From contig RBZT01000618.1 in NCBI GenBank assembly GCA_003693705.1, forward strand, positions 1 through 48,691: a stretch of 48,691 nucleotides of DNA, given 5' to 3'. A program made the position numbers and the translations under genes. This DNA is from Polymyxa betae A26-41 (lineage: Eukaryota; Protista; Endomyxa: Phytomyxea). The notes under the pieces are model-generated. The model did not search any database and was not told the origin of the DNA. It saw only the letters and a list, made by a program, of their open reading frames with translations. Every line of letters starts with the position of its first letter. The stretch's first letter is position 1. This document shows, piece after piece, positions 260 to 6,679 of this stretch.

Positions 260-530
260 TAAAATGTATTTTGCGTTTGGGCGGTGTGCGTGATTTTGTT
301 TTGGTTTTGAATTTTAATTTTTAACCAAAAATGTAATTGGGTGTTTTTTGGGAAATGGAAAATTGGGGATGGGGTGATTATATTTTTTGGGATGGGCGGG
401 TATGGTATGGGAGTGATATTTTTGGAAAATGGTTTTTGACAATGACAAGGGGGGTTTTTTGGGGTTAGGGTTGATATTTTTGAAATCGGTTTTTGGAAAA
501 TGACAAAACGGATTTTTGGGGGAAAGAAAT
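260..530. repeat. G/T-skewed low-complexity tract with an imperfect ~60-bp tandem duplication and one telomere-like GGGTTAGGGTT
   Basis: The plus strand is almost devoid of C. The unit TGATATTTTT..GAAA(A)T..GGTTTTTG..AATGACAA occurs twice (~413-448, ~472-506), and GGGGTTAGGGTT sits at 461-472. Confidence 0.5.
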
Positions 531-1269
531 ATACACCTTCTTTTTTCGCAGCAATACGATCAGAAACCCAACTGGATTCAAAAGAAGCGATAAGTTGTAA
601 ACGACCAGATCGGCAAATTCAGCAATGAGCCGATAACGAAATTCTGATCTTGTTTACAGATGAATTTGTTAAGAGCAGGTAATTGTGTTGGAAAGTGGCT
701 GCCAACCAAATCATCCAGCTTGGTTTGGTTCGTTCTGAATGGCGTGCGAAAGAATATGGATCGACAGCTTGAAGATGCGATCTTTGACATCGGGCGGCGG
801 ATTTCGAGGGCGATCCTGGGTCGAGTGTTAACGTGGCTCTGCCGGCGAAGGATCCTTTTCGGGCGGAAGTCTTCTGGTTTGCTATGAGGTCGATAGCATT
901 GAGGAGATACGGTTAGGGTTTTAAGTTTGGTATTTATGGGAGCGCGTTTTGGAGTTTTTTGGCATTGTATCTGCATTCGACGGTATTTGGAATATGGATT
1001 CAAAATCAGAATGGTAAGAGCATCTCCAGCGTGGAGCTAAACTGCGAGCTAACGCTAATTTTGGCTCAGAATTTTGCCCCACCGCAGAGCTAAGAGCTAT
1101 CTAAAATTAAAATTGCGGGGGTGCGCAAGCTATCCCAACTGAAATAGCTCCCGAATCTAACTGCAGATCTAGCTGCATTTCTTTCTATTTTTTGAGAAAA
1201 TCTCCAATAAAATCTGCGAAACCGACCGCGCTTTGATTTGAAAAACTAAAGGGATACCGATACGTAACC

Positions 1270-1776
1270 ATTGGGAAGGGAAAGGCTTGGACGTCGGAGG
1301 AAGACATGTTCCTCACCAGATCCATAGTTTCCGTCAGCCACGATCCACTGACAGGAGCCGATCAATAGGCGAAGCAATACTGGGAAAAGGTTTTTGATCA
1401 GTTTAAAAAGTTTGCCAGCGAAACCGGAAGAACTGCTTGCGCTTTAATGAATCGTTGGAAAAAGGATCTGCAGCCGTCTCTCAATGCCTTCTGCGGCCAT
1501 TACAACACCGCCAAAGCGACACAAGAGTCAGGAAAAGAAGAAGAAGATTATATTCTCAAAGCAATGGCGCTTCATGAAGCTGCAGAAAAGACGAAATTTC
1601 AATTTCGTATTATTTGGGAATACCTGAGGGTTAGCGTACCAAAATTTGAAGATACGATAGTCTGCACAGGAACTCCCTCTTTAACATCGCGAATGAAGCG
1701 TCACCGTCCTGACGATCCAACACACTACCCCTCAACCTGTCTTTACTCCAAGATCGACGGGGATTTTTTACAATAG
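1270..1776 (+). pseudogene. Harbinger ORF1 Myb/SANT-like DNA-binding protein, disrupted
   Basis: The frame reads GKAWTSEEDMFL..SHDPLTGADQ*AKQYWEKV..RTACALMNRW..FCGHY..ESG..D..A..F..IWEYL..PKF, the typical Pong/Harbinger ORF1 pattern. There is an in-frame TAG at 1366-1368, ATT at the probable start, and a truncated C-terminus. Confidence 0.85.
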
Positions 1777-2767
1777 CGAATCGCTGTTGAAGAACCCCAA
1801 ATGCTCGTTCAATATCTTTCCGACATGCCTCCTGCATTGTCGAAAAGAACTGACGAGCACTGCCCTGCGGATCAGGAATACTTTTGACGAAAACGGGCCA
1901 ATTTGGATAGATGCCGTCAGCAAGCCAATAAGGAAGATTGTAGACCGAGCCGTTAATTTCGAACTCGGCATTGTGTGCAGTTTCATCCAACAGAGCATGC
2001 AGCAATGGAGACCGCTGCAGAACATTGATGTCGTTCAATGATCCTGGCATACCGAAAAAGGCATGCCAAAACCAAAGGTCATAGGACACAGCGGCCTCGA
2101 GAACAATGCAAGTTCCTTTGATGCCTCGGTATGATCCTTGCCAAGCTCTCGGGCAGTTCTTCCATTTCCAATTATATCAGTCGATCGATCCAACCATTCC
2201 TGGAAATCCCCGCTTAGCGTTTTCCTGCATTATTCTTTGGAGGTCTTCGACAGTTGGAGAACGAAGGTACTCGTCGCCGAATTTTCCAATAATTGCTTTA
2301 CAGAACCGGTCAAGGCATTCGCTAGCTGTAGATTCCCCGATTCTGACATATTCATCAACAGCGTCGTAGGCGCATCCATACGCCAGAATTCGTATCGCTG
2401 CTACAGCTTTTTGTAATGTTGACAGTCCAGGTTCCCCAAGAGCGTTCTTCTTTTCTTGAAAGTAATCATCGTACTCTCGTATTCCAGCCGTTATTCGCAG
2501 AAACAATGCTCGACGCATTCGAAAACGACGACGAAAGAGTCTTGCACCATAAACAGGTCGTTCAGCAAAGTAATCCATATAAATACGCCGATGACCCTCA
2601 GCGAAACCACGGTCGTTATTGGGAGCTCGTCCAATAACAGATCCGCCGAAATTAGGCTCCTCTTCGCTGTCGCTAGATTCTAGATCAGCGAGAAGGAATT
2701 CCTCTATATCATCGTCCATCACAGCCTGCTGACGGGCGCGGAACATTACGTCTTCAATGAACGTCAT
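1631..2767 (-). pseudogene. Harbinger DDE transposase (HARBI1/Plant_tran-like), disrupted
   Basis: ORFs 2177-2767 and 1631-2089 are in the same frame. Motifs: FRRRFRMRR, GFPGMVGSID*YNWKWKNCP (TGA at the conserved Cys), GSLNDINVL, WLADGIYP, RKDIERAFGVLQ. The expected C-terminal CxILHN motif is missing. Confidence 0.93.
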
Positions 2768-2938
2768 GATTTATTATAGAAATTGTATAGATGCAATGCA
2801 GCAGCGAAGCTGATGTACATAGATAGCTTTTTCAACGCGGTGAACTAATCGCGAATAGCTCAGAGCTAAAATTCTCCGCCGCGCAAAAATCCGCATTAAT
2901 AGCTTTTGCTTTAGCTCCCAGCGGTGGAGTTGCTCTAA

Positions 2939-3539
2939 GACCCTGGTTCAAGTAAATAGACCCCGTGGCGCAATTGATGCTTCCACCAATCAGATTGCGA
3001 GTTGGTCTATTTCCAGATCTATTACGGAATATGATCTCCGTGGGGTTCGTTTCTGAAATAGACTTCTATTCCAGGTCAAGAATACGCAATAAAATTGCAT
3101 TTTTTTCATGGATCCGATGGTTGCTGAAGCTGTTACAGGGGGTCTGGTGGTTTCATTAACGACCCTAGCGGCTGGAATGATTGCAGCATGAACCCTGGTT
3201 CAGGTGTCGGTTTCAGTGACAGGAGGGGATCATTGGCTGGGCACACGTTGATATCAGCTCGGAGTTCGTTTGCACAGGCTAGATTTCGGCAATTACAATT
3301 GGAAAACTACAACGAAGCTACACTGGAAGCAAGGTAACTATTACGAACGAAGAACAGGAAAGTGAATCTTATACGTAAAGAGTTATTGCAACAAACTGCG
3401 CCCTTTCAGTACAGACGCAGAATTTGTTGCGGCACTCACGCAAAAACTGTTCATCTATTTCTTGATATATTGATGGGCGATTTACTTTGGCCGCAATTTC
3501 TGAAATTGTCCGAGGCGTCTATTTACTTGAACCAGGGTC
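2939..3539. mobile_element. Non-autonomous Harbinger-type element/MITE (element E2, 601 bp)
   Basis: Perfect 23-bp TIRs GACCCTGGTTCAAGTAAATAGAC (2939-2961 and 3517-3539), flanked by TAA at 2936-2938 and 3540-3542. No recognisable coding content. Confidence 0.9.
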
Positions 3540-3542
3540 TAA

Positions 3543-3839
3543 GAGCATCCACACCGCGCCCTTCTATTCACGAAGTTAAGCTACGGTAAGATAGCAATAG
3601 AATAGCAAAAAATTGCCGCTGCGCACAGTTCTATTCCGAAGTTTAAAATAGATCGACGCTATTTTCCCCTCGATCGTCGCTAAAATCTTTCTATCGGGTT
3701 CTTAGGCAAAACCGAAAATACAACTGCGGATAGTTAACTTAATCCCCGCGGTGTGAGAATTCGGTTCTATTCTATTTTACGCGGATTATTTCTGCTCTGA
3801 ATAGATTTGGACGAATAGATTTGCGCGATGTGGATGCTC
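3543..3839. mobile_element. Tourist-like MITE (element E3, 297 bp)
   Basis: TIRs GAGCATCCACACCGCGCCCTTCTATTC / revcomp GAGCATCCACATCGCGCAAATCTATTC (23 of 27 identical). TAA at 3540-3542 and 3840-3842. Internal CTATT/AATAG repeats. Confidence 0.92.
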
Positions 3840-4045
3840 TAAGAACGGGTGTTTTACACGAATAAATTCAGTAAATAAATCCGCCAAGTCTGGCCATTGC
3901 TCCAAGTCTCTAAATGTGTATTCGCAAAAAGCCAGTGAGATTTAATCTCGATCGGAAAGCAAGCCAGTTGATGTTAGCGTTGGAAAATAGCAAGGTCCAA
4001 AAAGAAGGGGTAACCCCAACTCAATGAAATTCAAAAATACACAAA

Positions 4046-4116
4046 TGCGCCGTCCGGGAATCGAACCCGGGACAACTCGTTGGCAACGAGCTATTATACC
4101 ACTTAACCAACAGCGC
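4046..4116 (-). tRNA. tRNA-Gly(GCC)
   Basis: GCGCTGTTGGTTAAGTGGTATAATAGCTCG-TTGCCAA-CGAGTTGTCCCGGGTTCGATTCCCGGACGGCGCA: 7-bp acceptor stem, GCC anticodon, GTTCGATTC T-loop, and a T5 Pol III terminator just downstream. Confidence 0.97.
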
Positions 4117-4382
4117 TTTCAGATGAGAAATACAGCAATTAATGCTCTTAATCTGGTCTGACAATTCAGGTTTGTCGGTCTTAACCACTTGTCCTCTACG
4201 CTCCTACAGTACCTGCTGCAATCAAAGGTAAAGGCGCAGGAGAATGCAGTGAGTGACTGTATGGGCATAACCCTCTATGATATCAGCCAAGCCTATTCTA
4301 GACGGTAACCTCACTGTATATCCAGAATTTCTGCATAACAGCTGACATCGTTCTATCTCCAGGCTCTTACAATCACTCTACA

Positions 4383-5306: not shown

Positions 5307-6679
5307 TCCATACTTAATATTGCTTGTAAAATATTGTCTGAAACCTCTACATGCGTATAATGCAATCGATCAAATGATAATAAATCAGATTTTGCATTGT
5401 CGTTGAGCTACCTTATAAATTCAGTTTTCTTTTATGGATTTCTCATCGCATTCTATACCGGTTTCACCATATCAGATAGTTTCATTTTTATCATCGACGA
5501 TAATGGCTGTTGCACCACCGGTTTCGCTATTGCTTTTTCAACGTCAAAAACAACGCTATTCGCAAAATCGATAAAACACAGACCACTTCTCTCTAGAGAG
5601 ACCTTGCACATTGAAATTTCTCAATGTCTGTTGAAATCTGGATTGCTGAAGATCTTTGCTCGACAGTTTCTCCAGACGAAAAAAAAATGATTCAATTGGA
5701 ACTTGGAACAAATGCATGAAACGGCCGAGAGGCTGTCATGCAAATTTACCAGTATGTCGACATCAGTTAAAATCGTCTCAAGCATACGCACTCTGGAGGA
5801 CATTTTATGCAGACCTCCGCGCAGTTTTAGTTTCACAGTCGCGCAGTAAACAATTGTTTGACGCTGTTATAATCGAGACTCAGACACTTCGATATTCTGT
5901 CATCTGTTCGTCCCAAGTGTACGGCATTTTGTTTTTACTTTTTTTAACTTACTGCGCAATTCTTTTTCTGCGACACTGCTGAGCGAAGAAAATCTGCGCA
6001 TCCATCAAATGACTGATTGGAAGATTGTGAGGGCGGTTCCCTTCTCTTGATTGTTGATGGGCCGTTTTCTCACTCACGTTCGAAGGTCGTCTATGGGCAA
6101 TGTCTTAAAGGTGCGAATGTGGCGCCATGCTATGGGGATTATGGCGGCAAACCACCCGAGCCTGCACCATACTGCAATCGCTATTGAGCGACAGACTCGC
6201 GTCAAACGGCGCCGCCTAGATGACGGCTGCAATGGTTTTCTGAAAGCTCGCTGTCTGGACGCCGCCTGTACATTCTCCTATGAAGATATTCCTCAACCAA
6301 AGGCACCGCCGGTTCCGCCAGCTCGTGCTCTGCCGCCTGATATCCCTTGTCGATGCATGAAGAGATCGAGACTTTGTGGTCGACGTCCATGCGAAGTTCG
6401 TCTTGCTAATAATTCTATGTTTGTAGCGTTTTGTTGGATTTTTTCGTTCTTAATTCATGTAGGCTGTGCAAAGAGATTCAAAATCGACTTTCACCCGGTC
6501 GATGGCTGACCAGCGAGATCGGTAAAACTTGATATTTTTTTCTCAAAGTTTCTGATTGAAAAATTTTAGTTAACTCGTACTTGCATCTGGTCTGTTCGTC
6601 ATTATCTGGCCATGTTGCGGCTGCATCGAGTTTCATGCTGACCTCGTTAATGTCGGCGAGTGGCGGCGACGGCGTTCGC

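Follow-up and report, generated by a model that had tools for sequence, protein, structure and literature searches.

Three PIF/Harbinger elements docked end to end in the Polymyxa betae A26-41 genome, and the recurrence of insertion at resident element ends

Three PIF/Harbinger elements (E1, E2 and E3) were found to abut one another in contig RBZT01000618.1 of Polymyxa betae A26-41, within a stretch of 48,691 nucleotides that is referred to here as the window. Docking of this kind was seen elsewhere in the genome far more often than expected by chance, and its cause lies beyond a short sequence preference. The explanation that we favour, with a probability of about 0.7, is that the stack arose by three separate insertions, that docking is recurrent across TIR families, and that the boundary of a resident end is a strongly favoured target by a route other than a short motif. 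According to this explanation, one original TAA (AGAATGG-TAA-GAACGGG) would have been entered by the three elements in separate cut-and-paste events, each of which would have duplicated the TAA. The two later elements would have integrated exactly in a TAA copy that abuts the end of a resident element, and the outcome would be a train without nesting in which neighbours are separated by a single TAA.

Direct reading of the sequence confirmed the order of elements that had been proposed in an earlier note on this DNA, with coordinates that were exact to the base (Table 1). The stack reads AGAATGG-TAA-(GAGCATC...GTTGCTC)-TAA-(GACCCTGG...CCAGGGTC)-TAA-(GAGCATCC...GGATGCTC)-TAA-GAACGGG. As had been claimed, neighbours had one TAA in common, with neither nesting nor spacer, the junction triplets were CTC-TAA-GAC, GTC-TAA-GAG and CTC-TAA-GAA, and removal of E2 from the stack would give CTCTAAGAG.

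Table 1. Features of the stack, with positions in the window
Feature	Position	Strand	Details
TAA, first target duplication copy	1015-1017		Left genomic flank ...AGAATGG; direct reading
E1, decayed PIF/Harbinger element, 1918 bp	1018-2935	-	A-type TIRs 1018-1031 and 2922-2935
E1 second-ORF remnant, stop-interrupted	1230-1776	+	Myb/SANT-like motif (W-x2-EED) at start, by eye
E1 transposase remnants, frameshift-broken	1631-2767	-	Two ORFs, 2177-2767 and 1631-2089; Pfam
TAA common to E1 and E2	2936-2938		Direct reading
E2, non-autonomous element, 601 bp	2939-3539		Perfect 23-bp B-type TIRs 2939-2961 and 3517-3539
TAA common to E2 and E3	3540-3542		Direct reading
E3, MITE, 297 bp	3543-3839		A-type TIRs 3543-3559 and 3823-3839
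TAA, last target duplication copy	3840-3842		Right genomic flank GAACGGG...; direct reading

The boundaries of E1, E2 and E3 were independently confirmed, since solo members of each family at other loci stopped at the same bases and were flanked by TTA or TAA. The 3-bp TTA/TAA duplication beside the TIRs, which is a PIF/Harbinger trait, was present for all three elements. TIR identity was 23/23 for E2, 16/17 for E3 and 12/14 for E1, and the arms of E2 and of E3 were recovered by an inverted-repeat scan. When A- and B-type ends were gathered, 85 of 116 were TWA-flanked, with TTA and TAA equally frequent. The earlier description of three distinct TIRs held for E2, which differs (GACCCTGGTTCAAGTAAATAGAC), and failed for E1 and E3, which have the A-type start GAGCAWC..CA.CG in common; this start had 108 matches in the genome versus 8 in the control.

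E1 encodes the remains of a Harbinger-type DDE transposase. Its minus-strand ORFs matched the Pfam families Plant_tran (PF04827, E 6.8e-49) and DDE_Tnp_4, and atlas neighbours carry Plant_tran/DUF8418. E1 lacks approximately 810 bp that are found in its 98%-identical sibling (G000:C967:15303-17964). No Pfam match was obtained for the 109-aa piece of the second ORF or for the 116-aa version of the sibling.

The two shorter elements had the features of Tourist-like, non-autonomous relatives. E2 was derived by deletion from a 2.46-kb Harbinger element (C571:18763-21220) that encodes a DDE_Tnp_4 transposase, and both of its arms match that element; no family match was found across its 601 bp. It is short and non-coding, carries the ends of a transposase-bearing relative and is multi-copy, with at least 15 termini genome-wide. 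Likewise, E3 met the description of a Tourist-like MITE, being short, non-coding and multi-copy with TWA duplications, and having a TIR start in common with E1-type elements. Five full-length copies of the E3 family were found, at 76-85% identity. The order and the independence of the insertion events at the stack locus are inferred. E3 is probably the oldest resident, with E1 and E2 as later arrivals; the nearest copies of E1 (C967) and E2 (C699) were each 98% identical, and the nearest copy of E3 was only 85% identical.

Shared-TWA junctions also were present elsewhere in the genome. The right end of the closest copy of E1 reads ..GTTGCTC-TTA-GGGGGTATCAAAG (C967), and this neighbouring terminus had 87 genome matches versus 1 in the control. 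At C873 the junction reads ..CCAAACGGGCCC-TAA-GACCCTGG, with a terminus that had 28 genome matches versus 1 in the control, and at C197 it reads ..GATGCTC-TTA-GGCCATTTTTAGGCC, with a motif that had 30 genome matches versus 0 in the control. C686 and C934/C85 are probable further junctions of this kind. The shared-TWA junctions involve five TIR types, for two of which the flanks were read and for three of which the census used coordinates alone; the D motif in the census may be something other than a transposon terminus. No homotypic stacks (A/A, C/C or E/E) were detected by the flank census or by coordinates, a result that was not significant given that about 1.6 were expected among 6 junctions. 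In the other stacks, the distal ends of the neighbouring elements were not found or were degenerate, and in several of these stacks the neighbours may be truncated.

The count of end-to-end stacks against random expectation, which the earlier note had proposed as a check, gave at least five docked insertions compared to 0.02-0.66 by chance (P <= 6e-4 with the most generous set of assumptions). If sites were chosen at random among about 791,000 TWA sites, a single locus with two base-exact abutments would be expected at a rate of approximately 1e-5 or less per genome. In the favoured explanation, end docking is a recurrent property of TTA/TAA-targeting elements in the P. betae A26-41 genome that crosses TIR families. 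Because it does so without a short motif, the junction of a resident Harbinger end with its duplication would be a strongly favoured target; this boundary would most likely be bound, nicked or bent by transposase, which would leave it readily usable by a further integration complex.

Four other accounts of the stack were weighed. That E1, E2 and E3 form a composite unit, or that the stack is an assembly artefact, is very improbable, even though the stack lies 1 kb from the contig end in a repeat-rich stretch. The composite transposon was ruled out, since each family is also found by itself at other loci of the 27-Mb genome, where its ends and TTA/TAA duplications are the same, and there was no second locus at which the three were found together, as the earlier note had recognised a composite unit would require. 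With respect to an artefact, both flanks were unique in the assembly, a 3-nt overlap cannot mislead an assembler, and three of the four stack junctions were bridged exactly, with no differences, by contigs of independent public runs: flank/E1 (517-1062, plus 517-1149 in a run that bears the label of a different organism), E2/E3 (3513-3716) and E3/flank (3769-4072). No bridging piece for the E1/E2 junction was present among the public-run contigs listed. Neither an empty nor a partly filled allele was found in the assembly, and no element-skipping joint was seen in four public runs, the contigs of which are short and break at repeats. The extended consensus of PIF/Harbinger targets is CWCTTAGWG, and the earlier note had accordingly attributed docking to sequence preference alone: GAG/GAC TIR starts and the TAA would rebuild a near-ideal palindromic CTC-TWA-GAG target that draws later elements. 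Several observations fit this model. All TIR types begin with G, so that a weak C-TWA-G core is regenerated; C at -1 or G at +1 was enriched approximately twofold (31/78, p=1.4e-5; 26/71 without the stack flanks); E2-type solo insertions hinted at TC at -2/-1 (3/12); and an extended 9-bp target preference has been described for plant PIF/Harbinger elements (PMC2836001, PMC6327408). However, the 78 unique solo half-sites did not show the predicted CTC/CWC and GAG/GWG preference. Only C at -1 was enriched (40% versus 19%), positions -2 and -3 were flat, and CTC and CWC were present at 1 and 5 of the 78 half-sites, respectively, against a background of 1.0% for CTC; a CTC flank was seen at just one of about 100 GAGCAWC-type ends. 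When scored with an empirical position matrix, the TIR-built targets reached only 0.2-1.9 times the average TWA site, and CTC-TAA-GAG, as formed by the end of E1 and the start of E3, reached 0.38 times. There were 123 CTCTWAGAG sites in the genome, with only one A-type end at one of them, and transposon-derived sites would make up approximately 1% of the roughly 30,000 TWAGAG half-sites expected across the genome by base composition. In addition, the neighbours in the other stacks begin with GGGGG, GGCC or GGGCC, not with GAG/GAC. On the basis of the flanks, the matrix scores and the CTCTWAGAG sites, a CTC/GAG logo was rejected. The regenerated G of the weak core is far too little, and the enrichment of docked junctions is therefore not explained by the ends. 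The self-regenerating model is largely refuted in this genome, and as the cause of the stack we consider it highly unlikely; three independent, non-nested elements, exact docking and above-chance recurrence stand from the earlier note, and its proposed sequence cause does not.

An intrinsically hot site, at which an unusually good original target was re-used while one genomic half-site survived beside the TAA, is an unlikely alternative that drew some support from the reconstructed empty site, which scored at the 98th percentile and 7 times the average when its own flanks were excluded from the matrix. One genomic half-site would be retained throughout in four of the six possible orders of insertion, and PIF is on record as having inserted six times independently at a single maize site (Walker et al. 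1997, as cited in PMC1925063). Nevertheless, a 7-fold advantage falls short by four to five orders of magnitude, docking of the same kind was seen at no fewer than four further loci, the flanks of which are unrelated, and tRNA proximity, a possible regional cue, was at background level. End-joining capture was judged to be similarly doubtful. In such a pathway transposase would cut one resident end, and an element excised elsewhere with compatible 3-nt TWA overhangs would be ligated in, which could occur between any Harbinger pair. Elements of the superfamily excise precisely in nearly all cases (109 of 110 events; PMC2836001), a precision that would imply complementary 3-nt ends, and capture would account for both the base-exact junctions and the indifference to TIR family. 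The pathway is wholly inferential, however, and sequence cannot separate it from true integration into TWA.

A tRNA-Gly gene was located 204 bp from the stack and a tRNA-Asp gene 108 bp from the sibling of E1. Targeting of tRNA genes was rejected, since a tRNA was present within 1.5 kb at only 4 of about 65 loci, which equals the window's own density and, with 63 of 1372 genome-wide tRNA candidates scored, supports no claim of enrichment.

Returning to insertion at resident ends, a broader proposal can be put forward tentatively, with somewhat less than even expectation: that the PIF/Harbinger integration machinery specifically targets the 3-nt duplication at any resident Harbinger end of any TIR family, recognizing a transposase-bound, nicked or bent boundary and not the base sequence. 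Docking would then be harmless and would build growing trains, as a eukaryotic counterpart of IS30 end-targeting. If resident ends are indeed strong targets, the superfamily would have a built-in safe landing in compact genomes, MITE multimers would be explained without a sequence consensus, and transposon annotation would be biased, as a train could be mistaken for one large or chimeric element.

Adjacent MITE multimers in plants are already known. Tourist/PIF multimers, formed by adjacent or nested insertions, have been described in maize, rice and mosquito (Jiang and Wessler 2001, as summarised in PMC5172404). As far as that summary describes them, they belong to the same superfamily, use TTA/TAA targets and form non-random clusters by independent insertions, with MITEs favouring landing in or beside MITEs; compared to the multimers as summarised there, docking in P. 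betae was base-exact at the resident end, involved five TIR types, took place in a 27-Mb genome where copies are few, and was measured against the logo of solo insertions. The microsatellite-associated Mutator-like MITE clusters of pineapple (PMC8449440) likewise consist of non-nested, independent adjacent insertions and are not mobile as clusters, but there a (TA)n microsatellite target lies between the elements, whereas here there is one 3-nt duplication with neither spacer nor microsatellite. At the PIF site of the maize r gene, in keeping with the 9-bp PIF/mPing target (PMC2836001; Walker et al. 1997, via PMC1925063), one TWA was re-used by different elements of the superfamily; in the account given by these sources an extended sequence preference explains the re-use, whereas in P. 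betae the preference was weak (only C at -1) and did not explain docking. In IS30 a transposon end is a hot insertion target that yields abutted elements (PMC9333248). That system is bacterial, moves by copy-out-paste-in and targets its own family, so the likeness is one of behaviour only and not of membership.

Direct reading of the sequence gave the order AGAATGG-TAA-E1-TAA-E2-TAA-E3-TAA-GAACGGG, which matched the layout and junction triplets described in the earlier note. The window is contig C835 of the eukaryotic assembly (G000; 27.1 Mb, 1001 contigs). The inverted-repeat scan picked up the arms of E2 and E3, and showed the right end of E1 and the left end of E3 to be mutual inverted complements. 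An A-type TIR start, GAGCAWC..CA.CG (108 genome matches, compared to 8 for the reversed control), was common to E1 and E3. The TIR of E2 differed from this type and was designated B-type (GACCCTGGTTCAAGTAAATAGAC; 15 termini). The three TIRs had been described as distinct; this was correct for E2 but not for E1 compared to E3, since these two elements share a TIR start.

Two minus-strand ORFs in E1 matched Plant_tran (E 6.8e-49) and DDE_Tnp_4, with a frameshift between them, and a plus-strand ORF was broken by a stop. The closest copy of E1, on contig C967, was 98% identical on both arms, approximately 810 bp longer and likewise decayed. Both arms of E2 matched a 2.46-kb element at C571 that carried a 283-aa DDE_Tnp_4 ORF, a relationship that marks E2 as a non-autonomous derivative. 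E3 was a MITE whose nearest copies were 76-85% identical.

The possibility that E1, E2 and E3 formed one composite unit was ruled out, because each family was also found alone elsewhere in the genome with the same end bases and TTA or TAA flanks. The left and right flanks of the stack were each unique in the assembly. Contigs from public runs spanned the flank-E1, E2-E3 and E3-flank junctions with zero differences; no bridging piece for the E1-E2 junction was found among those listed. No joint that skipped an element was detected in these contigs, but they are of short length and end at repeats, so that little can be drawn from the lack of empty alleles. In run X11, whose label names another organism, the exact flank-E1 junction was present and depth was almost absent over the E1 interior, E3 and the right flank, which may reflect either a locus that is structured differently or a gap left by filtering.

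Coordinates of the stack and of related features
Feature	Location	Details
Multi-copy repeat	window 444-587	approximately sevenfold read depth; each of the four runs has several contigs that branch at 472, 504 and 540
Run X11, exact flank-E1 junction	window 517-1149
Run X11, almost no depth	window 1150-4331	E1 interior, E3 and right flank (3843-4331)
E1	window 1018-2935	TIR identity 12/14
E2	window 2939-3539	TIR identity 23/23
E3	window 3543-3839	297 bp; TIR identity 16/17
tRNA-Gly(GCC)	window 4046-4116 (-)	204 bp from stack
tRNA-Asp	locus L024 1320-1393	108 bp from C967 sibling of E1
tRNA-Leu	locus L070 1324-1411	90 bp from another A-type end
Closest copy of E1	G000:C967:15303-17964
Nested A-type element (L144)	G000:C952:1-144	at TAA inside B-like TIR, ..TGGTTCAAG-TAA-GAGCATC; nested, not end-to-end
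Nested A-type element (L084/L085)	G000:C187:5192-6058	607-bp element (5313-5919) within 867-bp element with C-type-like ends
Head-to-head A-type TIRs (L065/L066)	G000:C29:6700-6750	..GGAGATGCTC directly followed by GAGCATCTCC..; no target duplication between
Chimeric stretch (L005 723-1730)	G000:C920:103913-104920	C-type terminus after TTA, E1-like ORF fragment, then E2-like 3' half and B-type terminus before TAA

Other stacks were sought by comparing each flank with all loci taken from the assembly and then reading the junctions. Across a single TTA or TAA (TWA), the right end of the C967 copy of E1 adjoined a C-type terminus, GGGGGTATCAAAG (87 genome matches, compared to 1 for the control; mostly MITEs of 100-145 bp). 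At C873 an E2-like element adjoined an E-type terminus, CCAAACGGGCCC, across a single TWA (28 matches compared to 1, including one 326-bp inverted pair), and at C197 an A-type end adjoined the D motif, GGCCATTTTTAGGCC, in the same way (30 matches compared to 0), with TTA before the motif in every readable case. The D motif is not necessarily a terminus and may instead be a target or a satellite; it also occurred as outward-facing pairs around 0.3-1.7-kb units (C242, C243, C807, C149, C667, C781 and C85). Two further shared-TWA junctions are probable: C686, with a neighbouring terminus that has two genome matches, and C934/C85, with a single TTA between an A-type end and a 28-nt fragment of the D motif. 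The flanks of C-, D- and E-type ends were those within the loci taken, adjacency among these types was judged from coordinates, and the neighbouring elements in stacks outside the window may be truncated. Besides the stacks, near-terminal nested cases were found at C952 and C187. The head-to-head TIRs at C29, one like the left and the other like the right end of E1, resemble a circle junction or tandem dimer.

End-to-end stacks sharing one TWA were more frequent than chance would predict. Given approximately 791,000 TWA sites, 60-130 insertions, 265-1,000 TWAs next to a transposon and a fourfold bonus for sequence, 0.02-0.66 docked insertions (exactly into the TWA beside a resident end) were expected, compared to at least five firm junctions observed (P = 3e-11 to 6e-4).

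The cause proposed in the earlier note was that element ends rebuild a near-ideal CTC-TAA-GAG target; the target of maize PIF is reportedly the palindrome CWCTTAGWG (credited to Zhang et al., 2001). Flanks on the outer side of every listed A-type terminus and of the B-type termini, after removal of duplicates and of the window's own junctions, gave 78 unique TWA half-sites, which were compared with the 2,598 TWA half-sites of the window. The sole enriched position was -1, where C was present in 31 of 78 (background 19%, p = 1.4e-5) and in 26 of 71 once transposon-end flanks and the window's own flanks were also removed (p = 3e-4). G was depleted at -8, and positions -2 and -3 were flat. No CTC or CWC preference was seen in these solo half-sites (CTC 1/78, background 1.0%; CWC 5/78). 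In a position matrix from solo sites, targets built from TIR ends scored 0.2-1.9 times the average TWA site, and CTC-TAA-GAG from the E1 end and E3 start scored 0.38. Only 1 of approximately 100 A-type ends lay at a CTCTWAGAG site. This sequence occurred 123 times in the genome, compared to 441 for the reversed control and approximately 218 expected from base composition. Transposons made only about 1% of the approximately 30,000 TWAGAG half-sites expected by base composition; if half-sites were preferred, each docked insertion should therefore be matched by hundreds of solo ones. The CTC/GAG explanation thus fails in this genome, where element ends restore no more than the G in a weak core, C-TWA-G. 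The reconstructed empty site, scored with its own flanks left out of the matrix, fell at the 98th percentile (7 times average): a good original site, not an extraordinary one. Proximity to tRNA genes was not above the density of the window at large, the genome-wide tRNA list being partly scored, and supplied no regional cue.

Judged by divergence from nearest copies, E3 (85% identity) was probably the oldest resident, and E1 and E2, which both have a sibling at 98% identity, probably arrived later; the orders E2 then E1 and E1 then E2 are inseparable. Each insertion would have duplicated TAA, which would account for four identical TAAs in one orientation. Since elements of five TIR types dock to the exact base, and short sequence does not explain this, we infer that the boundary between a resident end and its duplication is itself the target. 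A transposase bound there might recruit or position another integration complex, or a nicked or bent boundary might be an easy substrate. Alternatively, an excised element could be captured by ligation to a resident end that had been cleaved on a single side; the 3-nt ends would be compatible, judging by near-always precise excision (109/110 events, PMC2836001).

Established features of the superfamily are a preference for extended targets, of 9 bp in plants and 15 bp in vertebrates, a requirement for two proteins, and excision that is precise (PMC2836001, PMC6327408). Adjacent stacking of transposons and MITEs is already known, and the stack in the window is a further example. Tourist elements form adjacent and nested multimers, to which over 10% of 6,600 MITEs in rice belonged (Jiang and Wessler 2001, relayed in PMC5172404), non-nested clusters of pineapple Mutator-like MITEs arose by adjacent insertion explained by a (TA)n target (PMC8449440), and bacterial IS30 is a known case of end-targeting (PMC9333248). 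To the known multimers the window's stack adds a single 3-nt duplication shared between neighbours, and docking in this genome adds the involvement of five TIR families and a local insertion logo that is insufficient to account for the stacking.
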